Notes under the pieces: generated by a model | The model's input: only the letters and a program-made list of their open reading frames with translations | Database searches by the model: none | Told to the model about the DNA's origin: nothing | Sequence record: OR538032.1 | Strand: one strand, 5' to 3' | DNA length: 64,000 bases | Position numbers and translations under genes: made by a program | Shown: positions 39,492 to 54,038 of the stretch, piece by piece | How positions within the stretch are numbered: the stretch's first letter is position 1 | How the letters are laid out: the number at the start of each line of letters is the position of its first letter

Positions 39492-39522
39492 ATGCGGGTT
39501 GTTACGACATCCCGCATAAATA
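39492..39522 (+). promoter_or_regulatory. Hairpin overlapping a T4 late-promoter-like CATAAATA
   Basis: ATGCGGG...CCCGCAT stem; CATAAATA at 39515-39522 (T4 late consensus TATAAATA). Confidence 0.45.
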
Positions 39523-39554
39523 GTTCTATATGGACTAACAAGGAAATTACGACA

Positions 39555-40085
39555 ATGCCAACTCCTACAACAGGTGCGATTTCAATCGGTACCGTTCGTG
39601 ATTATTTCAGTAGAACCGGCGCTGCTTCATTGTCTCAGTACTACAGAGGCGGCGGTATTGTTCCTGATATTACTGAAAACGCTCACGTACCAACTTCAGG
39701 CGCGATTAGCTTGAATGATTTGCGCGGTGTATATCGCTTGTCAACGTATACGACATCGTTTACGACAACATACAACACCACGGTTTCGACATCGAATACG
39801 ACTTCGCGTAGTACGTCAAGAAGTACAACTAGAAGTACTGCATACAATACAACTCGCTCGACTGCGTATACTACTACTTGGACAACTAGTCGAACTACGT
39901 CGGTGACTAAAGGTTCGTATTCGACATCATACACGACTTCTCGTGCTACATCACGTTCAACAGCATATAGCACGACACGTTCAACAGCTTATACGTCTAC
40001 GTGGACAACATCATGGACAACTACGTACAACACAACAATATCAACATCAAACACAACTTCACGAAGCACGCAAGTTGCAGTTTAA
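39555..40085 (+). CDS. Ser/Thr-rich repeat protein, probable fibre/needle or modification substrate
   Basis: RBS AAGGAA; start MPTPTT; two GAIS-type motifs; 28 tetrapeptide units around a TKGS turn. Confidence 0.8.
   Translation: MPTPTTGAISIGTVRDYFSRTGAASLSQYYRGGGIVPDITENAHVPTSGAISLNDLRGVYRLSTYTTSFTTTYNTTVSTSNTTSRSTSRSTTRSTAYNTTRSTAYTTTWTTSRTTSVTKGSYSTSYTTSRATSRSTAYSTTRSTAYTSTWTTSWTTTYNTTISTSNTTSRSTQVAV
39747..40082 (+). repeat. Coding tetrapeptide repeat (large residue + three mostly S/T), 14+14 units
   Basis: Y/F/W/R/V/I/N every fourth residue; arms share TTTYNTT[VI]STSNTTSRST and RSTAY.TTRSTAYT.TWTTS blocks. Confidence 0.9.
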
Positions 40086-40097
40086 CAAGGTTAAATT

Positions 40098-40316
40098 ATG
40101 AGCTACAATGAAGAACACGAGAACCGAATCAACGAGCTTGAGAACAAGGTTTCAAAGCTTGAGTCGATAATTGAAAATCTGGTTGAGTCAATGACTTCGA
40201 ACAGCGAAGCTATTATCGAACATATTGCATCACTTGAGACCGAGAGAGATTCGATTCTTGCATCATATGATGACAAACTTAATGAGATCGTGACCAAATA
40301 TGAACCCAAGCAATAG
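40098..40316 (+). CDS. Small coiled-coil protein
   Basis: Heptads INELENKVSKLESIIENL. Confidence 0.7.
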   Translation: MSYNEEHENRINELENKVSKLESIIENLVESMTSNSEAIIEHIASLETERDSILASYDDKLNEIVTKYEPKQ

Positions 40317-41154
40317 AGAAATGACTGGGTTCAATAACATTTCTCGCACCGGTAAGTTGAAATTACAAGCCGATGCAGACAACGTCCGTGCCATGTGTAT
40401 GGACGTTGTTCGTTTATTGAACTCCAAAAATATACCATCTAACTTCGACATCAATCACAATGACGGTGGTAACATCGGCGTGCATGAATGGGTGTCACAA
40501 ATCCGCTTCATTCACTTGAAATACATGAACGTTAATTTTCAAACGAAGATTTTCAAGCATGCCTATCACAACACTGAAAACGTCGTTGACTATTTTGACA
40601 CGTTCAAACATTCTGACAAATATCATCTTTCAGCGAAGCCTCGATTCTTAGAATATGAAAACGTCGTATTTCTATGCGGATCGAATGTACTTGAATTGGC
40701 AATTGACTTTGACAAGATTGATGCGTTGGTCGAACAATATCCTGATTTGGTGATTAAACCTCACCCGATTACGACGTTGTATTACATCAATATGCTTAAA
40801 TCTCGATATGGTTCAAAGCGAATTCTATCTCAGAAGATCAGTGGTGTTGATGTGCTTAAAGCTTCTAAACGTGTTTGGCTGCCTTCAACGTCTGAGTTCT
40901 GGTTCAGTGCTTTGAACTACGACAAAGAAATCGGGTTTATATCTAAAGATGGTTTCTGTGGAACATACACGTCAATCATCAACGCAGTGTGGGAATTGCA
41001 TGAAGAAACTGGTGATTCGCTGAAAGATATTGTGAATAAAATTATCTCGTCACCTTACTCAGGTCTTTATGGTAATATGACAGACTTTGAAGCGCATCAC
41101 GAGAAATACTGCAATGTGATTCTAGAACTCGGGGGCAATTTCGATAATGTATGA
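40300..41154 (+). CDS. GT-B fold glycosyltransferase-like (KpsS/sialyltransferase-type motifs)
   Basis: LVIKPHP followed by VLKASKRVWLPSTSEFWFSALNYDKEI. Confidence 0.6.
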   Translation: MNPSNREMTGFNNISRTGKLKLQADADNVRAMCMDVVRLLNSKNIPSNFDINHNDGGNIGVHEWVSQIRFIHLKYMNVNFQTKIFKHAYHNTENVVDYFDTFKHSDKYHLSAKPRFLEYENVVFLCGSNVLELAIDFDKIDALVEQYPDLVIKPHPITTLYYINMLKSRYGSKRILSQKISGVDVLKASKRVWLPSTSEFWFSALNYDKEIGFISKDGFCGTYTSIINAVWELHEETGDSLKDIVNKIISSPYSGLYGNMTDFEAHHEKYCNVILELGGNFDNV

Positions 41155-41779
41155 TTATGTAATTCACACGTCGATCAGTGACAAAAGTCAGTTAAACCAA
41201 CTTGCAATGTTTGTCGGGTCTTTCATCGAGACACACAAGAAAGGTCGCGTTGTCTGCGTGACTGATCTTGAACTTGATTTCACGATGCCTCGGCTGTCAT
41301 TTGAGAAAAAACTACCCGAAGAGTACGTTTTCATTTCAGTTGACAATCTATTTTTGCAAAAAACATACGGCGTGGTTAGCTACATTGATAGCGGCACTTG
41401 GCGATGTACTTGGCAAAAGAATGACCATGATGAGTTCGTTATTAAAAAGCATGGCGAAAGAAGCGGGTTGATTAACCCTGATATTGCGATTGCAAATTAC
41501 AATGTTTCGAGACATGGTGACCTCGACATGTATTACAACGCGCTTCGTTACATTGAGAACGCCATCACGATCAACTGCAAAGACTTTGCTCCTGCTGCTG
41601 AGAATAAAATCAACAGCTTTTACACGCTTGTATTTCCATGGGAGATTTATTTTCACGTTATGATCACTTACCAAGAGTATATTGATTCTGAATACGTTGA
41701 GCGAGTTCGCGCTAACTGTCATAAGTTCGCACACTCGGTTTATTACAGAAAATCAGGGTTGTTGCGTGATGGGTTATGA
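41147..41779 (+). CDS. Possible degenerate GT-A (GT8-like) glycosyltransferase
   Basis: AMFVGSFIETH...VVCVTD and YVFISVDNLF (imperfect DxD). Confidence 0.35.
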   Translation: MYDYVIHTSISDKSQLNQLAMFVGSFIETHKKGRVVCVTDLELDFTMPRLSFEKKLPEEYVFISVDNLFLQKTYGVVSYIDSGTWRCTWQKNDHDEFVIKKHGERSGLINPDIAIANYNVSRHGDLDMYYNALRYIENAITINCKDFAPAAENKINSFYTLVFPWEIYFHVMITYQEYIDSEYVERVRANCHKFAHSVYYRKSGLLRDGL

Positions 41780-42452
41780 TGAGATAATTCTAGTATCTGG
41801 GCTTGATAGTTTAGTTCTATACGAATTTCTTGAACGAAAGCCACACCCTGTTTACTTTAAATGGGGTTTTGCTATCGACGAACTTGAAATGGCTGCTTTG
41901 CCTGAAGAAACAACTATCATAGAAATGCCAGAGATTTTGCATTTGAAACATGATCCGTATGAGTTCAAGACGCCACGAAATCCCGATTTAATTGGTCGGA
42001 ATACGTTGATGTTTAACTCAGTTTTCCATGCATTTAGACCAAACGTAATTTATCGCGGGATGTTGAAAGGTGATGATTTCTATTACGACGCATCGCCTAC
42101 GCATTCGGATGAAATCGCAGCTATGTGGTCGAAAATGCTGAATAAAGATTGTCGAATTGAACAACCGTTCAAAGACAAAACGAAACGTGACATAATGCAA
42201 ATGGCGGTTGAATACGGGATTGACGCGAATTCATTGCAGCATTGTTACAATCGAGAACATAACTGTGGTCGATGTAGCAAGTGTGTAGATGCACATGTTA
42301 ATTCTATGTATACCGACAATCCAGACATCATGTGGCTGAAACGAATAGTTAATGACTCGGGTATGGCAGCATTGGCTAATCACATGTTTGGTGTTGATAC
42401 CGTTGACAGAATCAAGGAATTTCTAGATGAATTTGATCGAACAGACCGCTGA
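41769..42452 (+). CDS. QueC-like PP-loop ATPase
   Basis: VSGLDS, GRNTLMF, YYDAS, EQPF...TKRDI, CYNREHNCGRCSKC; start moved to ATG 41769. Confidence 0.75.
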   Translation: MGYDEIILVSGLDSLVLYEFLERKPHPVYFKWGFAIDELEMAALPEETTIIEMPEILHLKHDPYEFKTPRNPDLIGRNTLMFNSVFHAFRPNVIYRGMLKGDDFYYDASPTHSDEIAAMWSKMLNKDCRIEQPFKDKTKRDIMQMAVEYGIDANSLQHCYNREHNCGRCSKCVDAHVNSMYTDNPDIMWLKRIVNDSGMAALANHMFGVDTVDRIKEFLDEFDRTDR

Positions 42453-43320
42453 TAAATTCGAGCATAGTTACCGAGAAGACGTTCAAGGCGTACAGTGGTA
42501 TTTCGGTAGTCGAACGCATGATTTTTATCTGTATGGAATAGACTCTCTTATTGATAAAGTCAAAGACTACGATTTTATTGAAATCAAGCATGTTCAAGAG
42601 GGTACGCTGGTTAAACGAGGCGAAGCTGCGGTCACGATTACGATTACAGATCATAGTCGTATCGCATATGGGAACATGATTGAAACATTGTTGTACAATG
42701 AGTTGTGGTATTCGAGCACGGTCGGTACGATTTTACACCGTTGCCTTGATGTGTTGCATGAAAACGGCTATGACGCTCGGTCAGCATACCCTCAAATCGG
42801 ACGAGCGAGTTCAACGCCAGAACAATCAGCTAAAGCAAGGGATATGTTCGCTCGTATATTTTATCAATCATCGAATGAGAAAATACCCGTTGCGATGCAC
42901 AGTGATATTCTAATCAACGGTGAGGAATATTGCATGGAGCATTATAACGGCATCATGATTGATACTTTCGATAAGCAAGCTTGCATTGACTTGATCAACA
43001 AGAAAGACTTTCGAGGGACTGTGATGGTTGACTCTCAGCCAATAATTGAAACAATTGAGAAAGTTCTAGCTGAAACAAAATGCTTTGTTGCACAAGCTGA
43101 AAGTGTTACACTCGATGAGTGGATAGAGATAGTGCGACATTTTAAAGGTAATAATCGAATTTTCTACGGGATTGGTAGCTTTGCATTTAGCAATATATCA
43201 CGAGACACATTTGGGTTGATTTACAAAGTGTGTGCAGTTAAGAGAAACGACAATTGGATCGGTGTTTCAAAGATGACGACAGGTAAACAAACATCGGCTG
43301 GTTATAAGGTTATAGGTTAG
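42427..43320 (+). CDS. Compact divergent NAMPT/NadV-like phosphoribosyltransferase
   Basis: Colinear motifs with NadV at 46486: EGTLV, IETLL...LWYSSTVGT, MHS, IDTFD, YGIG...SRDT, SKM. Confidence 0.75.
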   Translation: MNLIEQTADKFEHSYREDVQGVQWYFGSRTHDFYLYGIDSLIDKVKDYDFIEIKHVQEGTLVKRGEAAVTITITDHSRIAYGNMIETLLYNELWYSSTVGTILHRCLDVLHENGYDARSAYPQIGRASSTPEQSAKARDMFARIFYQSSNEKIPVAMHSDILINGEEYCMEHYNGIMIDTFDKQACIDLINKKDFRGTVMVDSQPIIETIEKVLAETKCFVAQAESVTLDEWIEIVRHFKGNNRIFYGIGSFAFSNISRDTFGLIYKVCAVKRNDNWIGVSKMTTGKQTSAGYKVIG

Positions 43321-43322
43321 TT

Positions 43323-44312
43323 ATGAATTATTGTATATCGCCATTTACATCGCCGTCTATTACACCAGACGGTTTTAAAATTTGCACCATGCCGGGTCAG
43401 AAAGTATACCCTGATATTTCATTCTGGAATAGTGATGAAGTGATCAAGATTCGCGAACAGATTATCGCTGGTGAAATACCTGAATCGTGTAAGACATGTC
43501 GTAGTATGCGTGACGGGTTGATTGTGTCAAAAGAAAAACCAACTGATACTCATGTTGACTTGAATTTCAAAGCTCTTTACATTGCGCGGTCGAACAAGTG
43601 TGAATATGCTTGTGAAATGTGCAGTTCATCAATCTCACATAGCTATGACAAGAAATACAATGACGGTAAGTTGGGGATTATCGAGAATGACTTTGATGTT
43701 ATTCCGTACCTGCACGAAACACAAGCCGTTGCTATTTCGGGCGGGAACCCTGTCATTGACAAAAAGGTTGCAGAGATTCTTGAGAATCTAGACCCTGACG
43801 TGGTAAAACATTTCATCATTACCTCAAATGGTACAGTCTTTCCAGACAGATTCTTGAATGCAATTAAGCGATTGAAATGCAACGCGACTATGATATTCTC
43901 TATGGACGGACCGAAAGAGTTTAATGAAGTGGTTCGATCTGGTGCGAAGCAAGAGAGAATCTATCGCACCATTAATCGAGTTCTTGACGAGATTGAAGAT
44001 TACCCAAACTTGCATGTGGCAATTGAATACACTTTCACGAATAAGTCAATTCATCACTACGTTGATTTGTATGATGAAATGCTCTTCGAGATCAACCCGA
44101 AGCATTTGAAAAACAACAAAGTTAATGTGATTGCGAATATGTGTACATACCCGCATCACCTTAGCGTTACAACTGTTCCCAAATCCGTCATTGATGACAT
44201 ATTGTTCAATCAGTTGCCATATTTGAGAAAGCAACCCAGCCCATTGTCAAATCAATTCAAACTTGGTTATGATAAGTTTTTGACTCAGTATCACAACAGC
44301 GTGATTATGTGA
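43323..44312 (+). CDS. Radical SAM protein with N-terminal twitch domain
   Basis: YCISPF..C..CKTC N-terminus; CEYACEMC; SGGNP; TSNGT; SMDG. Confidence 0.85.
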   Translation: MNYCISPFTSPSITPDGFKICTMPGQKVYPDISFWNSDEVIKIREQIIAGEIPESCKTCRSMRDGLIVSKEKPTDTHVDLNFKALYIARSNKCEYACEMCSSSISHSYDKKYNDGKLGIIENDFDVIPYLHETQAVAISGGNPVIDKKVAEILENLDPDVVKHFIITSNGTVFPDRFLNAIKRLKCNATMIFSMDGPKEFNEVVRSGAKQERIYRTINRVLDEIEDYPNLHVAIEYTFTNKSIHHYVDLYDEMLFEINPKHLKNNKVNVIANMCTYPHHLSVTTVPKSVIDDILFNQLPYLRKQPSPLSNQFKLGYDKFLTQYHNSVIM

Positions 44313-45429
44313 TCAGATCATACGCTTTGATGTGTGAGTAAAACTCTGGACACGCAGACGATAAATTAGTTTTCGTCTTCGTGTCTATTCTCTTGTTAAG
44401 CACAAAGAATTCAGGGTTGAATTTACAAACACTGTGTTTCAGAGTAAGACATTCAGCAACGTGCTTGAATGGTCTAGACAAATCCTCACGCCCATCTTTT
44501 AAATACGCTTCTTCTTTCACTTTGAATCTTGATAATAGCTGGTCTCGAAATGCAACTGGAATGTTGTAAATTGAGTATGGATTATCAGGCTCACCAACGA
44601 CATGTACAGACAGACGTACACGTTCACCATCATAAAGCGAATCAAAATCTGAAACCAGTGTTTCAAGATGTTCAAGAGTCACGTTTGACACGGTCGCAGT
44701 GATAACTACATCAAAGTGTTCCTTGATGATTTCAATGTTTGATTTGACTTTCTTGATGTCTGCAAACAATCGAATATAATCTTGGTATTCTCGTAGACCG
44801 TCGATTGATACGAACACCGTTGATGCATTAGCTTCTTTAAGCGATTTGATGAGATCTGAGCCATCGGCTAACACTAGTGATGAACCATTCGTGAAAATAT
44901 TCACCGTGCCTTTAATGTCGCCTACGCTGCGAAGAACTTCAGGAGCATTTGACGAGCGGGTAATTTCACCACCTAGAATTGTCAATGATGAAAGCCCTTT
45001 GCTGATTGTGTTGATTGTCGTACTCAAATCATTGAATCGAGTACTTGAATCTTCTTCATTAAACAATCTAGCTTTCAAGTCTGATAATTTGCTATAGCAG
45101 TAACGACAAGCGTGGTTACATTCATTACTAGGGAATACTTGTAGCCAGCGAACTGAATCGGCAGGCATGATTGGTGAAACTTCAGAATCGTGTTCGGTTA
45201 GGCGCTGTGGATCATTATCAGTGATGCACATTTGACATGCCTTTGATAGCTTGCTCATGTCGTGGTTTAGCATTGCTTCACGATAAGCGACAAGCTTTTC
45301 ATCATTCCAAGCGTCTGCTAGTGTTTTTTCATCAGTAAACCATTCATAATCAGCCGAACAGCAAAACGTAATTTGATTGTTTGCTCGTGTGATGAACTGC
45401 TTGAACGGCATATAACATAGTGGTTTCAT
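44305..45429 (-). CDS. Radical SAM protein with N-terminal twitch domain
   Basis: LCYMPF..FCC..CQMC; CNHACRYC; LGGE; FTNGS; SIDG. Confidence 0.85.
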   Translation of the reverse strand: MKPLCYMPFKQFITRANNQITFCCSADYEWFTDEKTLADAWNDEKLVAYREAMLNHDMSKLSKACQMCITDNDPQRLTEHDSEVSPIMPADSVRWLQVFPSNECNHACRYCYSKLSDLKARLFNEEDSSTRFNDLSTTINTISKGLSSLTILGGEITRSSNAPEVLRSVGDIKGTVNIFTNGSSLVLADGSDLIKSLKEANASTVFVSIDGLREYQDYIRLFADIKKVKSNIEIIKEHFDVVITATVSNVTLEHLETLVSDFDSLYDGERVRLSVHVVGEPDNPYSIYNIPVAFRDQLLSRFKVKEEAYLKDGREDLSRPFKHVAECLTLKHSVCKFNPEFFVLNKRIDTKTKTNLSSACPEFYSHIKAYDLIT

Positions 45430-45439
45430 GCTTCTGTCC

Positions 45440-46012
45440 TTAGTTAAAAATGCTACTTGTATATATAGCGGTCTTCAGGGCATTGAAATGATCGTCAACT
45501 CTATTCACGTGTATGCATTCAATGTCAAATCTTTCTTGGATTTCTCGGATGTTGTCTAGCGAGTCGTCGATGAAGTACTTCACATCATGCAGTTCACACA
45601 GCTTCTCGACATACTTTGCCTTCGAGTCGAAGTACTCAATCGAAATCACTTCACTTATCATTCCTGGGAATAACGCATTTAGATTATGCACGCGATTTGA
45701 CCATGAAGTTCTACTCATGCTGAACTTGGTTAGTGCAATGATGTTATAACGGTCTGAGAGTTCGCGTAACGCATCGTAAGCGTCTTCATATGCTGGTATG
45801 TACTTTGCACACTCATGTTCATTGTATGCCCCTATAAGCTTTCCTAGTTGCATGTCGCTCACGTTAATAAATAAAGAGCGTGCATCGGTATCAGTATTTG
45901 AACCGTTGATATTCAAATTATCAAGCATGCCTAATTGCATCATGAAGAATGGCAAGTTGGCTTTCCAGTTAAGCAAAACCCCGTCTACATCTATGATGAT
46001 AGTCTTTTTCAT
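45440..46012 (-). CDS. HAD phosphatase, 5'(3')-nucleotidase-like
   Basis: IDVDGVLL, ALTK, K, FIDDSLDN; RBS GAGG. Confidence 0.8.
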   Translation of the reverse strand: MKKTIIIDVDGVLLNWKANLPFFMMQLGMLDNLNINGSNTDTDARSLFINVSDMQLGKLIGAYNEHECAKYIPAYEDAYDALRELSDRYNIIALTKFSMSRTSWSNRVHNLNALFPGMISEVISIEYFDSKAKYVEKLCELHDVKYFIDDSLDNIREIQERFDIECIHVNRVDDHFNALKTAIYTSSIFN

Positions 46013-46043
46013 TACTACCTCGAAAAAAAATTAAAATTTTTCG

Positions 46044-46147
46044 AAAAAAAGTATTGACACTTCGTTTCGTTCATGTAATACTTATCTCAACTTAACGAAA
46101 CAAGTTAAACAAACAAGACAACATTTAATCAAAAAAAGGAAATACAC
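46044..46147 (+). promoter_or_regulatory. Early promoter
   Basis: A-tract, TTGACA(46054)...TAATACT; RBS AAGGA. Confidence 0.7.
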
Positions 46148-46384
46148 ATGAAAAACTTCAAATCAATCGCAACTGCACTTCTTCTAACTATGACTTTCTC
46201 TGCTGGTGCTTTCGCACACGGCTCAGGTGGTACGCTAGGTGGTAACCTTGGCATCGAAATGTGCAAAATCGGAGCAATCAACTGCGGCTTCCCTAAACAA
46301 GAAGTTAAAGTTGAAAAAGAAGCACCAAAAGCTGAAAAGGCTGAGGTGAAAGAAGTTAAGCTGGCAACTGATCTGACAGCTTAA
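46148..46384 (+). CDS. Small secreted protein
   Basis: Signal peptide ending AGAFA; mature part with C-x6-C and Lys/Glu tail. Confidence 0.7.
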   Translation: MKNFKSIATALLLTMTFSAGAFAHGSGGTLGGNLGIEMCKIGAINCGFPKQEVKVEKEAPKAEKAEVKEVKLATDLTA

Positions 46385-46387
46385 TTG

Positions 46388-46414
46388 AAATGTGCAGATT
46401 CGTCTGCACATTTT
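46388..46414 (+). terminator. Intrinsic terminator
   Basis: AAATGTGCAGA-TTCG-TCTGCACATTT-T. Confidence 0.8.
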
Positions 46415-46485
46415 GTTTAATAACGACGCATCGAGACATATACTAAAGTCTCACACACAATCAAGCATAAAATGGGAGCCATACA

Positions 46486-47979
46486 ATGCTAAATCTTACT
46501 CAAAATATCGCAATCGCAACTGACAGCTACAAAGTTTCACACTGGTCTCAATTCCCTCGTGGTCTAGAGTACAGCCAATATTACGTCGAAAGCCGGGGTG
46601 GTAAGTTCGACAAAATTATGGTCGATGGTATGGCATACATGTGTCGTATTCTCGAAAAAGGTGTTTCGATGAACGATGTCAAGCGTGCGAAACGTCTGTT
46701 CAAAAAGCACTTCGGTTCTGAAGTCTTCAATGACAAGGGTTGGGACATCATCGTTAACGAACTGAAAGGCAAACTGCCTATTAAGATTCGTGCGGTCAAA
46801 GAAGGTACTGTAGTACCAGTTAAACACCCTATCTTGACGATTGAGAACACAGATCCGCGTTTTGGTTGGCTGCCTGGCTATCTTGAAACGTTCATCTTGC
46901 GTGCTCTTTGGTACCCGACAACTGTAGCAACGATCTCGTTCGAAGTGAAGAAAATCATTCGCCAATTCATGAAGAAGACGGTTGATGATGAACGCATTGC
47001 AGAACAAGAGCCGTTCAAACTTCACGACTTTGGTTCTCGTGGTGTATCAAGTGGCGAATCAGCGGCTATCGGCGGCTCTGCTCACTTGAAAAACTTCTTG
47101 GGTACTGACACTGTAGAAGCACTTGTTGCAGTTGAAGAACTTTACGCTGAAGATGTTGAAGATTTCATTGCGGGATTCTCTATCCCTGCACGTGAACACT
47201 CAACAACTACAATCTACAAAGAAGTTGGTGAAGATCAAGCATTCTTGAACTCTATCGAGCAATGGGGTGCGGCATTATACGCTTGTGTAATGGACAGCTA
47301 CGACTACGAAGCAGCAATGAATCGTGTCTCGACTGGTCGCTTCAAAGAGCTAATCATCAGCAAAGGCGGTACGTTTGTTGCTCGTCCTGACTCTGGTGTG
47401 CCTGTAGATGTAGTAATGAAAGGTCTTGAGATTCTTGGTAAAAACGTTGGTTATACAATCAACAGCAAGGGTTACAAAGTATTGCACCCTAGCTACCGCA
47501 TCATTCAAGGCGACGGCGTGAACATCGAAGAAATTCGTCGAATTCTGTCTTACATGGAAAGTAAAGGCTGGTCGGCAGAAAACATTGCATTTGGCATGGG
47601 TGGTGGTTTGCTTCAGCAACTCGACCGTGATACTCAACGCTTTGCAATGAAAATGTCAGCGGCAATCATCAACGGCGAATACGTTAGCGTGTTCAAAATG
47701 CCGAAGACTGACCCGACAAAAGCATCAAAAGCAGGTTTCTTAGATTTGATTGCAGTCGATGCAGACAATCCGAACCCAGCGGCTCGTGGTTACGTGACGT
47801 TCTCTTCTGAAGATTACGACAATCGCGTACACCCGAAAAGCGTGATGCAGACAATCTTTGAAGACGGTGTAACAGTTGCTGACTTCTCACTCGAAGAAGC
47901 TCGTAAACTGTCTGACGTACAAGCTGATTTCCTGAACGAAGGTGAATGGAAAATCGCGAAAAAGATTCAAACTGCGTAA
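46486..47979 (+). CDS. nadV: Nicotinamide phosphoribosyltransferase
   Basis: ATDSYKVSH, LHDFGSRG, GTDT, PAREHS, RPDSG, QGDGV, GMGGGLLQ, RDT. Confidence 0.95.
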   Translation: MLNLTQNIAIATDSYKVSHWSQFPRGLEYSQYYVESRGGKFDKIMVDGMAYMCRILEKGVSMNDVKRAKRLFKKHFGSEVFNDKGWDIIVNELKGKLPIKIRAVKEGTVVPVKHPILTIENTDPRFGWLPGYLETFILRALWYPTTVATISFEVKKIIRQFMKKTVDDERIAEQEPFKLHDFGSRGVSSGESAAIGGSAHLKNFLGTDTVEALVAVEELYAEDVEDFIAGFSIPAREHSTTTIYKEVGEDQAFLNSIEQWGAALYACVMDSYDYEAAMNRVSTGRFKELIISKGGTFVARPDSGVPVDVVMKGLEILGKNVGYTINSKGYKVLHPSYRIIQGDGVNIEEIRRILSYMESKGWSAENIAFGMGGGLLQQLDRDTQRFAMKMSAAIINGEYVSVFKMPKTDPTKASKAGFLDLIAVDADNPNPAARGYVTFSSEDYDNRVHPKSVMQTIFEDGVTVADFSLEEARKLSDVQADFLNEGEWKIAKKIQTA

Positions 47980-48010
47980 AACGTGACATTGATCACTAAA
48001 AATCGTAAAT

Positions 48011-48086
48011 TTAGGGTTGCTTCGGCAGCCCTTTTTTCGTATTATAGCTACATCGAAACGAGATACGAAAACAAAGAGAGAACATT
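48011..48086 (+). promoter_or_regulatory. Fused terminator / early promoter
   Basis: GGGTTGC-TTCG-GCAGCCC-TTTTTT; TTGCTT-17-TATTAT; ATCGAAACGAGA. Confidence 0.8.
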
Positions 48087-48413
48087 ATGCAACTAACTTC
48101 TAAAATGACTAAAGCTCAAAAAACTAAAGTTGTTGAAGGTTTCAACTTCGAGCGTGAAACAGGTCAAAGTCAATACAAATACCGCAACGGTACTTACAAC
48201 ATGGAAGGCGGTGATGTTGCACGTCGATTCAATCTAATCTCTACTATCGTGACTGGTAAGCCAGCGATTATTCCTGAAGCGACAGTTGCTGATTTCGACC
48301 GCATTGTTCTTATGCAAGCAATGACTGATCAGTTCTTAACAATGAGTGCTGGTAAAGCTTCTCTTGAAGAATCTAACGAATTTGGTAAAAAAGTGCTTGC
48401 ACACTTCGCTTAA
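48087..48413 (+). CDS. Hypothetical early protein
   Basis: Leader-driven ATG. Confidence 0.75.
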   Translation: MQLTSKMTKAQKTKVVEGFNFERETGQSQYKYRNGTYNMEGGDVARRFNLISTIVTGKPAIIPEATVADFDRIVLMQAMTDQFLTMSAGKASLEESNEFGKKVLAHFA

Positions 48414-48454
48414 TTCAATTAGAATACTTACATCAACTGAGAAGAGAGAACATT

Positions 48455-48697
48455 ATGAAAGCAACTATCCCACAACTTAAAAAGAAAATCAATTCACTTG
48501 CTGACAAATACGGTTACGCTTTTGATAAAAACGCACCGTACTACGTAAACGACGGTCGCATCAAAGCAATCGAAGCTGCCATCATTACTGTCAAAGAAGA
48601 CGGTGAAGCGAATCCAACTCGTCGCTACGAAATCAGCGAAAAGCAGCTTGTGTCACTGAACAACTGGGTTCGTGATTTGAAACACAAATATCTGTGA
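48455..48697 (+). CDS. Hypothetical protein
   Basis: GAGAGAACATTATG leader. Confidence 0.75.
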   Translation: MKATIPQLKKKINSLADKYGYAFDKNAPYYVNDGRIKAIEAAIITVKEDGEANPTRRYEISEKQLVSLNNWVRDLKHKYL

Positions 48698-48703
48698 GGT
48701 AGT

Positions 48704-48943
48704 ATGTACGCAATACAAGCAACTAGTCATTTCGTTCAATTCGTTCTAAAGAGCGTGAGCGTAAATGGCTTCCCGAAATACGTGCCAATGTATACGTTTA
48801 ATTTGGGAATCATAACAACATTCGCAACTCTTGAAGAATGTCAAAAGTTCATCGACGAGTACGATCCCAACCCCGACGCATGTCTGCCATGGCGTGCATA
48901 TAAACTACACGATCTTGAAATCGCTCAACTGGAGACAAAATAA
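48704..48943 (+). CDS. Hypothetical protein
   Basis: RBS GAGG. Confidence 0.65.
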   Translation: MYAIQATSHFVQFVLKSVSVNGFPKYVPMYTFNLGIITTFATLEECQKFIDEYDPNPDACLPWRAYKLHDLEIAQLETK

Positions 48944-50211
48944 TGGGTTCATTTAACACTACTTGCGCAATCACTCGTACACCAATTCAAGAAGGCGGTC
49001 TTGCGCGTGTCTTTTTCTTAGAAATGGACGCATTTGCAACAAACTATTACGGTCGTCAAGGTCTGTTTAAGAACATCATGATGGGATGTGGTTGCTACCC
49101 ATGGGATAATTTCAAGATCATCGGTTACCCGCTGCTCGGCAAATATGCCGATTACAACAATTACGAGTTTGAAGATGCAGATATGGCTAATATGACGCTG
49201 GCTGCAATCAACAAACGATACGTACCAAATCGAGTAGCTGAAGGTAAGACGCTTGAAGATTACAATGAATATCATGATTACATGGAAATCGACGAGATTT
49301 CAGACATGAGTCAGCTTCAAGATATGGAACACAGTGGTTCGCTTCGAGTTAAAGGTGCGCATGGTAATGTAACTGCGGTTGTTAAAATGGCAATGCATGA
49401 AGAAGTGTACCAAATGATGCTTGAAGGTAACGTGACTGAGGGTTGGGGTGATGATGCGAAGACATATTCATTTGCCGACGACTTGAAACGTCTCACAGAT
49501 AAGTATAGTGGTTCAGTATCAGGTTTTGATGCATTAACCGAGCAACAACAGAAGCGAATGAATGACATGCGTGATGAGCTTTACGCTAAGGCTGACGCGG
49601 GCGAAATCAATGAACGCACTGGCGAACCATATACTCGTGAAGAGGCTGACAAGAGCTTCGAACAAATGGTTGAATGGCTTGCTGAAGACCGTATTGAGCT
49701 TGGCGGCGAACGCGCTGAATGGTTTGCACATCAATCTCATAGCCGAGATATGGCAAATCTTAAAGACAATCAAGAACTACTTCACAAACTAGCTGAAGCA
49801 GTCGTAGGTGCAAAATGGTGTGCTCGATGGATGATGTGTAACAACTACGAATTTGCACCTGTGATGACATGCGGTCAAGATTACGATACTGCTTCTCATG
49901 CGTCGCGTCTTCGTAAGCTTGCTGACATCATCGAATCGAAGAAAAACAAATATCACTACGAAGAGCACGTTGAACTTGATGTAGTTCGTTCTGAGCGCGT
50001 TGAACTGTCTCTAAGTAATCTGAAAGAGCGTTTTGCTGATTGGTACGATGAAGATGAACAAGAATATCAAGATCTACTGTCAGCGATTGAAAGTGTAAAA
50101 GAACAATCAAGCTTTGTTTACGGTGATGGTTCTATTTTCGATAAATTCATTGAAGAATACGACGTTCTACGTGATGTTGAAGAAAATACACAAATTCATT
50201 TCAAAAAGTAG
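48943..50211 (+). CDS. Large acidic hypothetical protein
   Basis: 422 aa; MGSFNTTCAITRTPI start; TAATG coupling. Confidence 0.75.
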   Translation: MGSFNTTCAITRTPIQEGGLARVFFLEMDAFATNYYGRQGLFKNIMMGCGCYPWDNFKIIGYPLLGKYADYNNYEFEDADMANMTLAAINKRYVPNRVAEGKTLEDYNEYHDYMEIDEISDMSQLQDMEHSGSLRVKGAHGNVTAVVKMAMHEEVYQMMLEGNVTEGWGDDAKTYSFADDLKRLTDKYSGSVSGFDALTEQQQKRMNDMRDELYAKADAGEINERTGEPYTREEADKSFEQMVEWLAEDRIELGGERAEWFAHQSHSRDMANLKDNQELLHKLAEAVVGAKWCARWMMCNNYEFAPVMTCGQDYDTASHASRLRKLADIIESKKNKYHYEEHVELDVVRSERVELSLSNLKERFADWYDEDEQEYQDLLSAIESVKEQSSFVYGDGSIFDKFIEEYDVLRDVEENTQIHFKK

Positions 50212-50271
50212 TTGACAAGGTGCGTGAGTGGCTGTAATATGTCACTCAACGCCTAACGAGAGAACAATATT
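50204..50271 (+). promoter_or_regulatory. Early promoter, duplicate of 578-650
   Basis: AAAAGTAGTTGACA...GTGAGTGGCTGTAATATGTCACTCAACGCCTAAC. Confidence 0.8.
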
Positions 50272-50532
50272 ATGAAAGATGAAATTACGCTGCACATTAA
50301 GAATCATTGGTTGCACCGTCGCGCATATTTCGTACTTTACAATAAACCGATGAAATTCAGAAAGAAAGCATTGGCTGAGTGGGAAGAAAAACGCAGTGAA
50401 TTTTGGTACGTAGTTCAACGACTTAATCCTGAGTTTTTCGCGCAGTGTCCTGAAGGTATGCAACCGTATTTGTCTTGCGTACCAACCCCGCGCAATGGCG
50501 CACAATACTTCTACATCAAATTTGACAAATAA
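50272..50532 (+). CDS. Hypothetical protein
   Basis: Leader-driven ATG. Confidence 0.7.
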   Translation: MKDEITLHIKNHWLHRRAYFVLYNKPMKFRKKALAEWEEKRSEFWYVVQRLNPEFFAQCPEGMQPYLSCVPTPRNGAQYFYIKFDK

Positions 50533-50543
50533 GAGAGAACATC

Positions 50544-51263
50544 ATGAAAAAATTAATCGCAATCGTAGCACTAGCAGCATCAGTAGCAATGACTGGTTGT
50601 ACTGACACCATCGACAATTCAGCAACTGATCAGCTAAAAGCAGCCATGCCAGTTCTTTCTCAAACTGAAAAAGATATGCTGAATGTATTCGCTGCTCCGA
50701 ACTTCTTGAGCCGTTACGACAACATGTATGCAGAAGTGGTCAAAAATCGCGTACACTTCGGTCAGAAGCCGATTCCACGAGCAGATACAGAAGTGCCGTT
50801 CTGTGATGTAATCGACGCTGTAATCGCAGCAGAGCGCGAAAACAATCTAACAGAACGTGATTACTCACTGAGCAATCAATGGAAGATGAAATACGGCATC
50901 ACACTTCTTGAGCAATGTAATCAATCAGACCGTGCTCGTATTGAAATGCAGATCGCTAAAGCAAAAGCCGATGCTGAAGCAGCTAAAGATCGAGTAATCA
51001 TCGAAGAACAAGAATTCAGCAAGAAAGAAATCAAAGCTGAGAAAATCATCGAAGACACCGTTGTAATCAAAGATGATGTGCTACTATCACCTGAACTTGT
51101 TCGTGAACTACGTGGCTCAGTTAAAGACTGTAATCGCGCTAAAGTCAAGCTAATGAGTGTAGTTGATGCCGGTGAGCAGCTAACTACAAAGCACTACGAC
51201 GAAGTTAAAGGTCTAGTTCTACAGTGTGAAATGTTGAAACTAGAAGTCGAACTCAACAAATAA
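50544..51263 (+). CDS. Lipoprotein, paralogue of 38001-38696
   Basis: Lipobox AMTG-C; EVPFCDVI, NQW..KYGI, CNRAK, KLEVELNK. Confidence 0.8.
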   Translation: MKKLIAIVALAASVAMTGCTDTIDNSATDQLKAAMPVLSQTEKDMLNVFAAPNFLSRYDNMYAEVVKNRVHFGQKPIPRADTEVPFCDVIDAVIAAERENNLTERDYSLSNQWKMKYGITLLEQCNQSDRARIEMQIAKAKADAEAAKDRVIIEEQEFSKKEIKAEKIIEDTVVIKDDVLLSPELVRELRGSVKDCNRAKVKLMSVVDAGEQLTTKHYDEVKGLVLQCEMLKLEVELNK

Positions 51264-51283
51264 CATGACTTGAATCACATAAA

Positions 51284-51306
51284 AGCCCCTTAATTGGGGC
51301 TTTTTT
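51284..51306 (+). terminator. Intrinsic terminator (copy 3 of 3 identical)
   Basis: AGCCCC-TTAATT-GGGGCTTTTTT. Confidence 0.8.
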
Positions 51307-51311
51307 CGTTT

Positions 51312-51381
51312 TAGCGGTTGTATGATGAATGGCAATTGCCTAATATAGCTACATCGAAACGACGAACACAAAGAGAACATT
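51312..51381 (+). promoter_or_regulatory. Early promoter and leader
   Basis: GGTTGTAT...CCTAATATAGCTACATCGAAACGA...AGAGAACATTATG. Confidence 0.7.
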
Positions 51382-51690
51382 ATGATTATCACAGACTTCC
51401 ACGCATTTGCACGCAGCGACATCGACTATAACGATAACGAGTACTTTTACATCGTAGCTGAACTACCATGCGGTTTTCGATTCGCACTTCAGGGAACTAA
51501 TTTCGGTGATGATGGTGACCGAGCAGAACGTTTCGCAGATAAGATTAATAAAGCGGGGCGTATTGACACAAATAATTGGTCAGAGATTGACCCTTGCTAT
51601 GGGTCTGAAGCTCATCAACGAATCGGTGATTTTCATCTAATGAGCGAAGATGAACTCGAACACGGTAGAAAAATGGGTTATTGGTTATAA
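51382..51690 (+). CDS. Hypothetical early protein
   Basis: Leader-driven ATG. Confidence 0.75.
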   Translation: MIITDFHAFARSDIDYNDNEYFYIVAELPCGFRFALQGTNFGDDGDRAERFADKINKAGRIDTNNWSEIDPCYGSEAHQRIGDFHLMSEDELEHGRKMGYWL

Positions 51691-51691
51691 A

Positions 51692-51714
51692 AAAGGGAGC
51701 ACTAAGCTCCCTTT
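51692..51714. terminator. Bidirectional terminator between convergent genes
   Basis: AAAGGGAGC-ACTAA-GCTCCCTTT. Confidence 0.75.
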
Positions 51715-51715
51715 C

Positions 51716-52768
51716 TCATTTCACCATTTTGATTTGAATCTGATTGTCCATGTAAGCCATTTTCTTTTCAAATTCAACATCATATTCTGGTCGATGTTCG
51801 TATTCGACTGAAAGCATTTGCTTCAGACAACGGTACAATTCCGACTTGTAATACCCTTCTTTCATTCCCTTCATCTGTTCATATTGCTTTTTCATAGCAG
51901 CTTTGATTATCTTCGGGTCCATGAATTTGATTGACATTTCTCGCGGTGCTTTTACTGTGCCAAAGTCAACAAACACCTGAGCCTTTTCAGCTACTTGAAT
52001 GAAGTCATAAATCGTGTCATAACTCATTCGACTTAGCGTGTGGTGCATACAAACATGTTTGCTATGTTCTTTTAGCAACGGTACATTTGCAAGCATCAAG
52101 TCGTGGTCGATGTTCTGACGAATGTATTCGTTGCGCTCTTTTCCGCCGTCACATGAAATTGTAAACACTAGACGATGTTTGTACTTTTTACATATGGCTA
52201 GAATCTTCTTCGCAAGTGTCGTATGCAACACAGTACCATTTGTCAGAATGTAAACTTCCGCATTTGTTTCTTCCATGACTTCAGTCAGAACTTCGACTGT
52301 TCTCTTGTCCATGAACGGTTCGCCGCCGTATAGCACAACAGTTTCAACACCCTTCGGGATACTGAAATCGAGTTGTGTGTAATCGTAATGGTCGTCAATG
52401 TCATACAAGTCCATGTATGTTTTGCTATTCTTGCCATAGCACATTCGACACGCTAGGTTACATTTGTTTGACATCAATATTTGAATTGTTCTAGGATGCT
52501 CTTCGAGTGCTTCATATTCGAAGTACTTCTGATCAGACAATTCGCCATAACTCATACATTCTTTGCAGTATTCTGGTAAAGTGTCATACTCAAACATTTT
52601 GGCACGATGTTCATTGATGATGTCACTGTGCCACCAGTCTTCAACGTTCGGGAATGGTTCACTTAGCTGAGAACAGCAAATGTGATACCCATCTGGTTTT
52701 GCGTCACGTGTATTAAAGGGAGAGCCACAAAGTGGTCTCTTCCCGTCTTTAAATCCGAATTTATCCAT
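51716..52768 (-). CDS. Radical SAM protein with N-terminal twitch domain
   Basis: LCGSPF..ICC..CKEC; CNLACRMC; YGGEPF; LTNGT; SCDG. Confidence 0.85.
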   Translation of the reverse strand: MDKFGFKDGKRPLCGSPFNTRDAKPDGYHICCSQLSEPFPNVEDWWHSDIINEHRAKMFEYDTLPEYCKECMSYGELSDQKYFEYEALEEHPRTIQILMSNKCNLACRMCYGKNSKTYMDLYDIDDHYDYTQLDFSIPKGVETVVLYGGEPFMDKRTVEVLTEVMEETNAEVYILTNGTVLHTTLAKKILAICKKYKHRLVFTISCDGGKERNEYIRQNIDHDLMLANVPLLKEHSKHVCMHHTLSRMSYDTIYDFIQVAEKAQVFVDFGTVKAPREMSIKFMDPKIIKAAMKKQYEQMKGMKEGYYKSELYRCLKQMLSVEYEHRPEYDVEFEKKMAYMDNQIQIKMVK

Positions 52769-53040
52769 TAATCTAGCTCATCAAGAAGTGATTGAAATTC
52801 TTCGTCGCGTTCAGCGTCGATTGTACCAGTCATCAACTCTGTTAGAGTCTTCAACGACTTGATCTCTGGTGGTTGAGGGCGTAGATCTTCGAGAATGTGA
52901 ATGATTGACTCGGCTGGGAGATCGTGATTTACAATCTCATCAGGCAGGTGGTGTTTGTAAACGCAGTCGTCGCCCCAATCAATAACTACTGCATGTTCCC
53001 ATTTGTCGATTTCTAGTATTTTAAAATTTGGTTTCATCAT
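52768..53040 (-). CDS. Small acidic hypothetical protein
   Basis: ATGA and TAATG coupling to both neighbours; start MMKPNF. Confidence 0.7.
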   Translation of the reverse strand: MMKPNFKILEIDKWEHAVVIDWGDDCVYKHHLPDEIVNHDLPAESIIHILEDLRPQPPEIKSLKTLTELMTGTIDAERDEEFQSLLDELD

Positions 53041-54038
53041 AAGCCCCAGAGTTCTTTCCAATGTGTTTTAGCATCTTGTCGATACTTCTCAATGTCAAAT
53101 TTTTGATATTTCTGTTCGATTGCATCATCAATGACGCGAATCAACGTATCATTGTTTATATCAGCACGAATCACTGGGAAAATAAAATCCCTTGTGTAAG
53201 GTGCGTCATGCTGAACAATACAAGGTATGTACTGACATGCTTCTAATAACGCATATGGCATAATCTCGATTCTAGACATATGAAGCAAAACTTTACTTTT
53301 CATCATATGTGCCATGACTCGCTCACGCCGTTGACAAGTTTCGACTATACAATCAACCCCACTCGGGATTCTTATTGGTTCGGTTGTGAATAGACGAATT
53401 TTAAGACCGCTGTATGCAAGCGCGTTTAGCATTTCGGGTATCTGCTTACGTTTGTATGCACCTGACACGATAATCACGTCAGACGCTTCAGCAGCGTCAA
53501 TATCAGCTTGTGATATAGACGGAAGCTCAAATGGTTCAAATGCAGTCACATGTTTGCCACCAATTACTTCTCGACCCCATTGTGCAATCCCGTTCGATTG
53601 AGCAATGTTAGTGACTAATGACGTTGACATCATGTGTCGCCATTGAGGTAAGTTGTAAATTTGATGAATGTCCATGTATTCGCGATATGAATCTGGTACT
53701 ATCAAGTCACCGAAATGATGTTGGTTGTAACAACGGCGCTTCGCTTCGATACATGCGCGGAGTGCTTCATATGAATGCGTGTAGATAATCGCTTCGCTAT
53801 CAATCGCGTTGATAACCATTGCGTTTGCCTTGTAGTCTTTATAAGACCGTTTCGTTAAAATGAAGTCACACCCGAAATCCCATTTGCTCACGTGTGGACA
53901 CGATTCGTCTCCGAGTACAATAACTTTGACATCACAGTTTAGTGATTGCATTAAACGAACGTGATCTTGAATGAATGTGTAAATACCGCCGCCAATTCCC
54001 AACATAAAGTCAGTTACTACGTAGCGAACTTTTTTCAT
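53037..54038 (-). CDS. GT4-like glycosyltransferase
   Basis: GIGGGIYTF acceptor loop; E-x7-E motif EIMPYALLEA followed by IPCI; RBS AGGAG. Confidence 0.7.
   Translation of the reverse strand: MKKVRYVVTDFMLGIGGGIYTFIQDHVRLMQSLNCDVKVIVLGDESCPHVSKWDFGCDFILTKRSYKDYKANAMVINAIDSEAIIYTHSYEALRACIEAKRRCYNQHHFGDLIVPDSYREYMDIHQIYNLPQWRHMMSTSLVTNIAQSNGIAQWGREVIGGKHVTAFEPFELPSISQADIDAAEASDVIIVSGAYKRKQIPEMLNALAYSGLKIRLFTTEPIRIPSGVDCIVETCQRRERVMAHMMKSKVLLHMSRIEIMPYALLEACQYIPCIVQHDAPYTRDFIFPVIRADINNDTLIRVIDDAIEQKYQKFDIEKYRQDAKTHWKELWGL

Follow-up and report, generated by a model that had tools for sequence, protein, structure and literature searches.

BtrN, the 2-deoxy-scyllo-inosamine dehydrogenase of butirosin synthesis (PDB 4m7s/4m7t), is the founding twitch-domain enzyme among the radical S-adenosylmethionine (SAM) proteins and acts on a carbohydrate-like substrate. 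Most characterised enzymes with a SPASM or twitch domain act on peptides or proteins. The anSME enzymes and the SPASM maturases of ribosomally synthesised and post-translationally modified peptides (RiPPs), such as SkfB, CteB, SuiB and PapB, carry this domain at the C-terminus, usually with two auxiliary clusters and often with a RiPP recognition element (RRE). The family model NF033640 describes enzymes in which a Cys-bearing N-terminal domain precedes the CxxxCxxC core and a helical C-terminus. Phages are known to encode the glycosylation of their own virion proteins, as in the O-glycosylation of mycobacteriophage capsids and tails. Here, we describe three genes, rS1, rS2 and rS3, predicted to encode radical SAM enzymes with an N-terminal twitch domain, in a stretch of 64,000 nucleotides (nt) from sequence record OR538032.1 (hereafter the window). 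The three genes serve two separable cassettes and not one pathway. As they are present in cultured phages (KVP40, nt-1, 6E35.1a and PG216), a first functional assignment is approachable by descriptive comparison.

Over bases 40000-54000, the window shows 100% identity with Vibrio phage PG216 (OR538032.1, matching coordinates) and 98% identity with KVP40, and so represents the first 64 kb of the genome of a KVP40-like Schizotequatrovirus. The KVP40 counterparts of rS1, rS2 and rS3 are KVP40.0260, KVP40.0261 and KVP40.0272, and in the KVP40 record all three have carried radical SAM or 'moaA/nifB/pqqE family' labels since the original genome (2003). Other names deposited in KVP40-like genomes are 'heme biosynthesis domain protein' and '7-carboxy-7-deazaguanine synthase'. 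The KVP40 papers merely list these genes, and a literature search returned nothing on NF033640 or on enzymes with an N-terminal twitch or SPASM domain. Thus the genes are long annotated, a family model exists and the enzymes are a divergent variant of a known, uncharacterised kind; what is new is the division into two cassettes, the evidence from fusions and synteny, the correction of labels and a widespread unit of a Thr-rich repeat protein and a KPHP-motif enzyme. The locus was compared with those of Vibrio phages nt-1, 6E35.1a and D479 and of the metagenomic contig L165; L-numbers denote compared loci and P-numbers individual radical SAM relatives.

Three radical SAM paralogues of a divergent phage branch

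The genes rS1 (43323-44312, plus strand, 329 amino acids (aa)), rS2 (44305-45429, minus strand, 374 aa) and rS3 (51716-52768, minus strand, 350 aa) are intact open reading frames (ORFs), rS1 and rS2 converging with an overlap of 8 nt. All the motifs listed for them in the initial annotation are present. In rS1, rS2 and rS3, respectively, the C-x-x-P-F start lies at residue 4, 5 and 14, the next single or double Cys at residue 21, 23/24 and 31/32, the CxxC motif at residue 56, 65 and 68 and the CxxxCxxC motif at residue 93, 104 and 103. A motif of SAM-binding type (GGN, GGE and GGE) follows at 140, 153 and 148 and an (S/T)NG motif of ribose type at 168, 180 and 176; both are kept in all orthologues, and every radical SAM motif is retained in the orthologues of four further phage lineages. 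The divergence noticed initially was confirmed by pairwise identities of 23-30% (BLASTP E 7e-10 to 1e-23), by which the three proteins are true but old paralogues. A dN/dS of 0.0066 has been reported for the rS1 orthologue and of 0.070 for the rS3 orthologue (PMC12028318). Combined, these sequence data show three intact, selected N-terminal-twitch radical SAM paralogues, and the best explanation is that rS1-rS3 are functional radical SAM enzymes, as predicted from their motifs.

All three proteins exceed the gathering score of PF04055 (38, 50 and 51 bits against 29.5), and NF033640 is their top NCBIfam model (E 8e-34, 9e-37 and 4e-39 for rS1, rS2 and rS3), with alignments running near end-to-end over profile positions 3-330, 2-396 and 4-382 of 398. 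The assignment to NF033640 made in the initial annotation therefore stands as to best family and coverage; it does not stand as to membership, since scores of 117.3, 127.1 and 134.8 bits lie below the curated cutoff of 170 bits and the trio are not members by NCBI's own threshold. In the phage protein families, phrog_14086 takes in all three (E 1e-147 to 2e-173). Taken together, the PF04055, NF033640 and phrog_14086 matches lie well outside what chance would give. The trio profile retrieves P0008, P0040, P0057, P0058 and P0065, which are bona fide NF033640 members (204-361 bits). The trio and their nearest relatives (P0005 and P0007) are, on these profile matches, a divergent phage branch (phrog_14086) of NF033640.

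As had been supposed, the trio does not score as a characterised family. Models for MoaA, anSME, QueE, NirJ, PqqE-type enzymes and viperin gave 15-48 bits against cutoffs of 180-650 and covered the core only. MoaA (TIGR02666) was rejected at 22-35 bits against 284, the trio having no conserved C-terminal Cys where MoaA carries its three-Cys auxiliary cluster; anSME (TIGR03942) at 17 bits or less against 349, QueE (TIGR03365) at 29 or less against 206 and NirJ (TIGR04051) at 44 or less against 515. Viperin was rejected likewise: NF038283 gave 25-42 bits against a cutoff of 180, and the PADLOC viperin models (PDLC02903/4) gave 27-48 bits, mostly over profile positions ~2-107 of 257, the cluster-binding half. 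The rS1 orthologue has been listed as 'Viperin, Defense?' from a DefenseFinder match of E 2.6e-4 (PMC12028318), a label that we regard as a generic radical SAM cross-hit.

The N-terminal auxiliary domain resembles the twitch domain of BtrN

A domain of ~90 aa with four Cys precedes the CxxxCxxC motif. In eight diverse N-termini, only these four Cys (C14, C32, C68 and C71 of rS3) and one Arg are invariant. When a full-length profile was compared with BtrN, the top-scoring stretch placed the profile N-terminus on the BtrN C-terminal twitch domain (39 bits), and the four invariant Cys align on BtrN C169, C188, C232 and C235, which we take to be the ligands of its auxiliary cluster. The inverted architecture proposed initially is thereby upheld, with the N-terminal Cys falling on the BtrN ligands ahead of the core. 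An N-terminal-only profile, whose sole PDB match is BtrN (14 bits, E 0.4), gives this alignment again and with it the stated placement of the four Cys; the match counts as alignment evidence and not as a significance test. The SPASM model PF13186 gave a divided answer: matches are significant in the N-termini of more typical NF033640-family members, and the best value on the trio is E 0.11, their domain being too diverged.

In the AlphaFold2 (AF2) model of rS3, strands 21-24 and 27-30 form a beta-hairpin between the first two Cys and are followed by helices, with a local predicted local distance difference test (pLDDT) score of 45-70. The twitch pattern of Cys, beta-hairpin, Cys, helix and CxxC is found with exactly four Cys, not the 7-8 of a full SPASM domain. 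The alignment shows no further conserved Cys in the trio beyond the four N-terminal and the core ones, and none at the C-terminus. Because no other Cys is conserved, the domain is read as twitch and not SPASM, and a single fully ligated auxiliary cluster is the predicted arrangement best supported by the sequence.

The three genes belong to two separable cassettes

On the minus strand, rS3 forms cassette B (51716-54038) with a candidate GT4-like glycosyltransferase of GT-B type (53037-54038, 333 aa) and a 97-aa acidic protein (52768-53061) that always lies between the two. The start codon (ATG) of rS3 and the stop codon of the preceding 97-aa ORF overlap, and the three genes are predicted to be translationally coupled. 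Cassette B adjoins nrdA in all four Vibrio phage lineages compared, the rS3 and GT4-like genes are always neighbours in the lineages compared, and orthologues of rS3 are 71-89% identical in nt-1, 6E35.1a and D479 and occur in 40 Vibrio phage records. Cassette B is core to KVP40-like Vibrio phages.

In contrast, cassette A (39492-46012), which holds rS1 and rS2, is accessory and recombination-prone. It is missing from the nt-1 locus in the locus comparison, nt-1 retaining cassette B alone, and nt-1 is not among the matches listed in phage-wide searches with the head domain of the cassette A repeat protein or with the KPHP enzyme. Those searches place head protein and KPHP enzyme in 35 Vibrio phage records each; the figure for rS3 is 40. 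In a published set, the cassette A genes are found in 16 and the cassette B genes in all 18 of 18 genomes (PMC12028318 Table S8). The block from the repeat protein to rS1 is shared, at 33-61% identity, with 6E35.1a, D479 and L165, where rS1 orthologues are 52-61% identical; for rS2, a 29%-identical counterpart exists in 6E35.1a only, with none in D479 or L165. Since the rS3 operon is kept in nt-1 and the repeat protein, rS1 and rS2 are not found there, the trio does not form one pathway. The suggestion that three copies act as sequential tailoring steps is not sustained, rS3 being in a separate core operon and rS2 being present in some lineages only. Multi-copy arrays and tandem fusions are general in the family, so that copy number alone says little.

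Cassette A opens on the plus strand with a Thr/Ser-repeat protein, the candidate substrate (39492-40085, KVP40.0254 in KVP40, 197 aa, with a conserved head of ~60 aa and a tail of 115 aa), a small coiled-coil ORF (40098-40316, 72 aa, phrog_5851), which lies ahead of the KPHP gene in the examined lineages, and the KPHP-motif enzyme (40300-41154, 284 aa), a candidate CMP-sugar glycosyltransferase of GT52/KpsC type by weak matches. These are followed by a 210-aa protein of unassigned fold (41147-41779), which always comes after the KPHP enzyme in the KVP40-type cassette and has orthologues of 33-38% identity in 6E35.1a, D479 and L165; it gave no Pfam, NCBIfam or PADLOC match, and its assignment as a GT2 enzyme was rejected when hhalign gave no support. 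Next come a QueC-like PP-loop ATPase (41769-42452) and a short NAPRTase/NadV-like paralogue (42427-43320, 297 aa; PF04095 E 3.5e-6; NF006629 E 3e-18, far under its cutoff; orthologues 50-51% identical). The start of rS1 lies 2 nt past the stop of the latter, as in a tightly packed operon. Beyond rS2, a HAD-superfamily protein resembling T4 30.2 (45440-46012, minus strand, 190 aa) is identified by a weak PF00702 match, phrog_420 and the KVP40 annotation, and its orthologues in 6E35.1a and L165 are 48-52% identical.

The QueC-like gene matches PF06508 with 36 bits, TIGR00364 with 28.5 bits against a cutoff of 150 and the PADLOC CBASS-type QueC model with 47.7 bits. Its ORF extends upstream to 41682, and its first internal Met codon is the ATG at 41769, near the annotated KVP40 start. 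In L165, the QueC-like and rS1 orthologues are fused into one protein of 558 aa (P0052). The true FolE, QueD, QueE and QueC genes of 7-deazaguanine DNA modification lie elsewhere in the genome, with the true QueC adjoining FolE (PMC12028318 Table S8), so that the QueC-like gene beside rS1 is a divergent paralogue.

The partner of rS3, the GT4-like protein, has an invariant E-x7-E pair (E258 and E266), presumably the GT4 signature. It gave a weak NCBIfam match to GlcN-PG synthase (E 0.0025), no Pfam match at E<0.01 and no PDB sequence match; the KVP40 record notes PF00534. The 97-aa protein is 52-82% identical over four lineages, has no PDB or Pfam relative and shows a dN/dS of 0.098 (PMC12028318).

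Several further features surround the cassettes. A full-length NadV gene (46486-47979) lies 0.5 kb from cassette A; its product has been described as the NARP2 NAD+-reconstitution anti-defence enzyme and detected in virions (PMC12028318). Between the cassettes, ORFs 46148-46384 and 50544-51263 have signal-peptide-like or lipoprotein-like N-termini by eye. Two genes carried by relatives of cassette A are absent from the window. One is an ORF of L165 (9800-10432), also of 210 aa, with a 2-oxoglutarate-Fe(II) oxygenase-like H-x-D...H pattern by eye and no Pfam match. The other encodes a 435-458-aa protein (L165:12266-13642; L170:28861-30195) with a weak fructosamine-kinase-like match; this protein, of 435 aa in 6E35.1a, has been named 'nucleotidyl transferase' (PMC12028318 Table S8). 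D479 (L171:34588-35679) has an extra radical SAM gene, whose 363-aa product has the cluster motif at the extreme N-terminus and no twitch domain; the gene lies directly upstream of the rS1 orthologue. Scans for sigma-70 promoters and terminators gave background level only, and an 8-base T4-type late-promoter consensus gave no match in the 64-kb window against 2.4 expected, an expectation so low that the result carries no weight as to timing.

A repeat protein and a KPHP-motif enzyme are paired in many phages

The tail of the cassette A repeat protein is 64% Thr and Ser, and in KVP40-type tails a bulky residue (Arg, Lys, Tyr, Trp or Phe) occupies every fourth position; the autocorrelation of the tail is 18 at lag 4 and 15 at lag 8, against 0-1 at other lags. 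Its head is common to the corresponding proteins of L002 and L006, with 9 invariant columns. The head domain was found in 215 viral stretches. Most of the proteins that carry it lie beside tail genes and have a Gly-rich, fibre-like C-terminus. Tails contain 45-64% Thr and Ser in head-bearing lineages, and the whole proteins of Caulobacter phages Lullwater and Cr30 contain 27-40%. At 74 control loci with a head protein, a KPHP neighbour was seen only at L090-L094, whose head proteins bear a Ser/Thr-rich tail; as L090-L094 are a single lineage, the locus-level Fisher P of 6e-8 overstates independence.

A search anchored on the KPHP enzyme recovered 78 viral loci, which fall into 18 groups. Upstream sequence is available for 16 of these groups, and in 13 the ORF preceding the enzyme on the same strand contains a Ser/Thr-rich region. 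Most of these ORFs have the lag-4 periodicity, the longest has 2,084 aa, and the inspected cases adjoin tail-fibre genes. The same pairing is present in Lullwater (gp41/gp42; L172) and in Cr30 (gp254/gp255, within gp252-gp255; L173). Equivalents of the coiled-coil ORF, of 51-107 aa, occur in L002, L006, L090, L165, L168, Cr30 and L340, and homologues of the KPHP enzyme in at least nine phage lineages. The pairing of repeat protein and KPHP enzyme is conserved, and no description of this unit was found in the literature searched. On aquatic phage contigs (L265-L343), the unit runs from a Thr-rich repeat protein of up to ~2,000 aa to the coiled-coil ORF and the KPHP enzyme (examples are L342:4315-8541, L288:4468-8754 and L340:5777-9645); these repeat proteins have one aromatic or basic residue per tetrapeptide and, at the inspected loci, lie beside tail-fibre genes.

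As to the KPHP enzyme itself, weak matches were obtained to PF07922 (E 6e-4, 19.6 bits against a threshold of 26.1) and to KpsC structures in the PDB (E 0.009 and 0.03), in which the K-P-H-P and S-E..A..G-K blocks align. Its Lullwater homologue weakly matches PF05159 (E 0.006, 16.5 bits against 20). K-x-H-P is invariant in seven sequences and aligns with the KPHP of KpsC; we take the H-P motif to be the signature of sialyl- and Kdo-transferases. The enzyme is, from these motifs, a candidate only for a transferase of GT52/KpsC (CMP-sugar) type.

The repeat-protein gene is labelled 'cell wall mannoprotein (Tir1p-like)' in phi-pp2, PC-Liy1 and 6E35.1a. No cassette protein was detected in virions (PMC12028318); the repeat-protein gene was uncalled in the re-annotation behind those proteomics, so that for this protein absence from the dataset is uninformative.

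Radical SAM genes of the phage branch adjoin or are fused to candidate transferases

Within the phage branch, P0050, P0051 and P0071 are natural fusions of a GT8 and a radical SAM domain. On an unrelated phage backbone (L002 and L006), two proteins with the head and a Ser/Thr/Trp tail are followed by a coiled-coil ORF, a KPHP enzyme, a GT2, a GT8, the N-terminal-twitch enzyme P0007 and another GT8. L168 has the order radical SAM, coiled-coil ORF, KPHP homologue, GT2-like, GT8, two GT8-radical SAM fusions and GT8. Thus adjacency or fusion of the radical SAM genes with candidate transferases and with the PP-loop enzyme is recurrent. N-terminal-twitch radical SAM genes are rare additions to the repeat protein/KPHP unit, seen in 3 independent lineages of ~24; the 74 control loci have none (P = 0.013). 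The recurrence of one gene order across unrelated phages makes the repeat protein credible as the neighbouring candidate substrate, as proposed initially, for rS1 and rS2.

Phages K566 and K567 carry, in place of cassette A, an island of four N-terminal-twitch radical SAM genes, a GT4-like gene homologous to that of cassette B, a GT8, PagP and an LpxC-like gene, apparently as the result of a swap at a recombination hot spot. The K566 island (L179, OZ196521.1 158000-180000) also encodes a 475-aa protein with a lipoprotein-like N-terminus by eye.

The wider family is large. A profile made from the trio and a few distant matches (profile A1) found ~6,000 representative clusters (50% identity) at E<1e-30, and cellular relatives are mostly in metagenome-assembled genomes of Bdellovibrionota and Chitinophagales. 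There are ~3.5 radical SAM ORFs per viral and ~2.7 per cellular locus, with many double proteins of ~800 aa. Many members of ~800-1,400 aa carry two or three complete N-terminal-twitch modules in tandem (P0015-P0049 and others; L178). Fusions of TPR and radical SAM domains also occur, and a canonical array of six radical SAM genes has a UDP-sugar dehydrogenase and a NodU-type carbamoyltransferase as its flanking genes. A census of 38 dereplicated viral loci was uninformative, the top neighbours being more radical SAM genes, proteins without assignment, one homing endonuclease and one epimerase.

Discussion

The comparison of loci suggests, tentatively, that the trio carries out radical tailoring of BtrN/anSME type within glycoconjugate synthesis, a plausible reading that we put forward with less than even confidence. 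Reductive cleavage of SAM would give a 5'-deoxyadenosyl radical, which would abstract a hydrogen atom from the substrate, and the fully Cys-ligated auxiliary cluster may, like those of BtrN and anSME, serve as an electron sink. If the cluster has this role, oxidation-type chemistry is most likely, the net reaction being either the two-electron conversion of a secondary alcohol to a ketone or, closely akin to it, an epimerisation or a cross-link, rather than a methylation; by analogy, we infer such BtrN/anSME-like oxidation from the four-Cys, fully ligated auxiliary site. Each radical SAM enzyme would tailor a sugar or sugar-like unit handled by its partner transferase. Cassette A could be understood as the tail-fibre-adjacent unit of repeat protein, coiled-coil ORF and KPHP enzyme, extended by the QueC-like, NAPRTase-like, rS1, rS2 and HAD genes, and rS1 and rS2 would ultimately yield a Thr/Ser-repeat protein that bears a modified glycan. 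From this arrangement we infer a glycoconjugate context and, for cassette A, that the final acceptor is the repeat protein. A more specific version, in which the radical SAM, PP-loop, phosphoribosyltransferase-like and HAD enzymes make an unusual moiety that the KPHP transferase installs on a fibre-anchored repeat protein, is possible and should be held with considerable doubt.

Several observations weigh against tailoring within glycoconjugate synthesis. To our knowledge, neither a substrate nor a product has been identified for a member of the NF033640 family. The AF2 model of rS3 has a mean pLDDT of 68, lower across the N-terminal domain, and a Foldseek search of the PDB with it returned generic radical SAM cores only (TM ~0.4); in BFVD it matched unnamed phage radical SAM proteins, and neither comparison pointed to a function. 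The model of the KPHP enzyme, from a three-sequence alignment, is unusable (pLDDT 33), and the KPHP and GT4-like proteins are glycosyltransferase candidates by weak matches (E 6e-4 to 0.03) and motifs. The QueC-like, NAPRTase-like and HAD partners would fit nucleotide chemistry too. The K566/K567 island contains neither a repeat protein nor a KPHP enzyme, and an N-terminal-twitch enzyme accompanies none of the 18 KPHP groups, with none in L090-L094, Lullwater or Cr30; the unit is thus usually without radical SAM genes, which are optional to it. Finally, narrow hidden Markov models of the GT8, GT4-like and KPHP proteins found neighbours at 1 of 79 viral and 0 of 78 cellular loci of the wider family, where other contexts are heterogeneous (B12-radical SAM genes with methyltransferases, or nothing telling). 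The idea that the whole family is linked to transferases was dropped after this negative enrichment and, given the heterogeneous contexts, our conclusions are limited to the phage sub-clade.

Direct, RiPP-like modification is one alternative, in which the radical SAM enzymes act on the Thr/Ser repeats themselves, for example by cross-linking the spaced Arg, Tyr or Trp residues, by anSME-like oxidation of Ser or Thr or by epimerisation, and the transferases decorate the protein independently. Peptide and protein modifiers are among the PDB matches (SkfB, CteB, SuiB, anSME, EpeE/YydG and TigE), the strictly periodic bulky residues of the tail would suit a repeat-recognising enzyme, and TPR fusions are known in the wider family. 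The repeat protein is moreover the first gene of the rS1 operon, and this synteny recurs in L002/L006 and L165. However, no RRE/PqqD-like domain was detected by Pfam in the radical SAM proteins or their neighbours, among them the 97-aa protein without PDB relative, remote homology being possible. Also, nt-1 retains rS3 and no repeat protein was found in it, K566 has four radical SAM genes and no repeat protein, most repeat protein/KPHP units lack radical SAM genes with tails alike whether these are present or not, and the GT8-radical SAM fusions indicate sugar-linked chemistry. We consider the RiPP-like alternative unlikely.

A nucleotide or small-molecule pathway, possibly anti-defence, is unlikely to the same degree. 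Here rS1, perhaps with rS2, would work with the QueC-like, NAPRTase-like and HAD proteins towards a modified base, nucleoside or nucleotide, analogous to the products of QueE-QueC or viperin, and the repeat protein would be unrelated. In the preQ0 pathway the radical SAM step of QueE directly precedes QueC, and in L165 the QueC-like and rS1 orthologues are fused. The phosphoribosyltransferase-like and HAD partners, the 'nucleotidyl transferase' of 6E35.1a, NadV/NARP2 0.5 kb away and weak PADLOC matches to pVip and CBASS-type QueC agree with such a pathway, and the region has been called an anti-defence island (PMC12028318). Against this, the viperin matches of 25-48 bits, with a cutoff of 180, concern the cluster-binding half only, and viperins and QueE have no N-terminal twitch domain. 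nt-1, in which no cassette A genes were found, has the true FolE, QueD, QueE and QueC genes too; the pairing of rS3 with a GT4-like gene and the GT8 fusions would be left unexplained, and the cassettes of L002, L006 and L168 combine radical SAM genes and transferases without any QueC-like or NAPRT-like gene.

It is less likely again that the cassettes, cassette B and the K566 island above all, remodel the host envelope by altering lipopolysaccharide (LPS), capsule or surface glycans and not a phage protein. Enzymes of the GT8, GT4, GT2 and KpsC types are typical of LPS and capsule synthesis; PagP and an LpxC-like gene lie beside the radical SAM genes of K566, nt-1 has PagP in the same region, and the canonical array comes with a UDP-sugar dehydrogenase and a carbamoyltransferase. 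That the cassette enzymes were undetected in virions (PMC12028318) agrees with a role in the host, but is equally expected of protein-modifying enzymes. Moreover, a Thr/Ser-repeat protein next to tail-fibre genes accompanies the KPHP enzyme in nearly every case, even in small podoviruses without other envelope genes, and no flippase, polymerase or lipid-carrier gene was seen in the cassettes.

Lastly, a housekeeping role in a characterised family (MoaA, anSME, QueE, NirJ/heme or PqqE), as older names deposited for KVP40-like genomes would have it, is highly improbable and refuted at the level of sequence by low, core-only scores and an auxiliary domain that is N-terminal and not C-terminal, the phages carrying a separate QueE-like gene besides.

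Natural variation in presence and absence thus assigns the copies to two cassettes and points to candidate partners and to one candidate substrate, and the published labels of viperin, QueE, MoaA, heme biosynthesis and cell wall mannoprotein are corrected. If a moiety is indeed installed on the repeat protein, this would be an undescribed class of viral protein modification and would provide a first substrate for an orphan N-terminal-twitch family, in a phage already cultured.

Among known systems, BtrN resembles the trio in the spacing of Cys, hairpin, Cys, helices and CxxC; its twitch domain is C-terminal, whereas that of the trio is N-terminal, and similarity between the cores is generic only. 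NF033640 members share with the trio the order of domains and the occurrence in multi-copy arrays and tandem fusions. The anSME and RiPP maturases, which are among the top structural and sequence neighbours of the trio, likewise combine a radical SAM core with a Cys-rich auxiliary domain; unlike them, the trio has a single N-terminal four-Cys domain and no detected RRE. RiPP precursors are leader-core peptides, whereas the putative substrate here is a 197-aa protein with a folded head, and the part of a precursor could fall to this adjoining repeat protein. Viperin and pVip resemble the trio in the cluster-binding half of the radical SAM core; a domain for an auxiliary cluster is lacking in viperins, and the context of the trio is no host defence locus. 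With the glycosylation of mycobacteriophage virions, the loci described here share transferase genes beside a Ser/Thr-rich segment of a structural-type protein. They differ from it in the strict tetrapeptide with periodic bulky residues and in the KPHP enzyme, a candidate of CMP-sugar type, and in the radical SAM, PP-loop and phosphoribosyltransferase-like enzymes that some lineages add.

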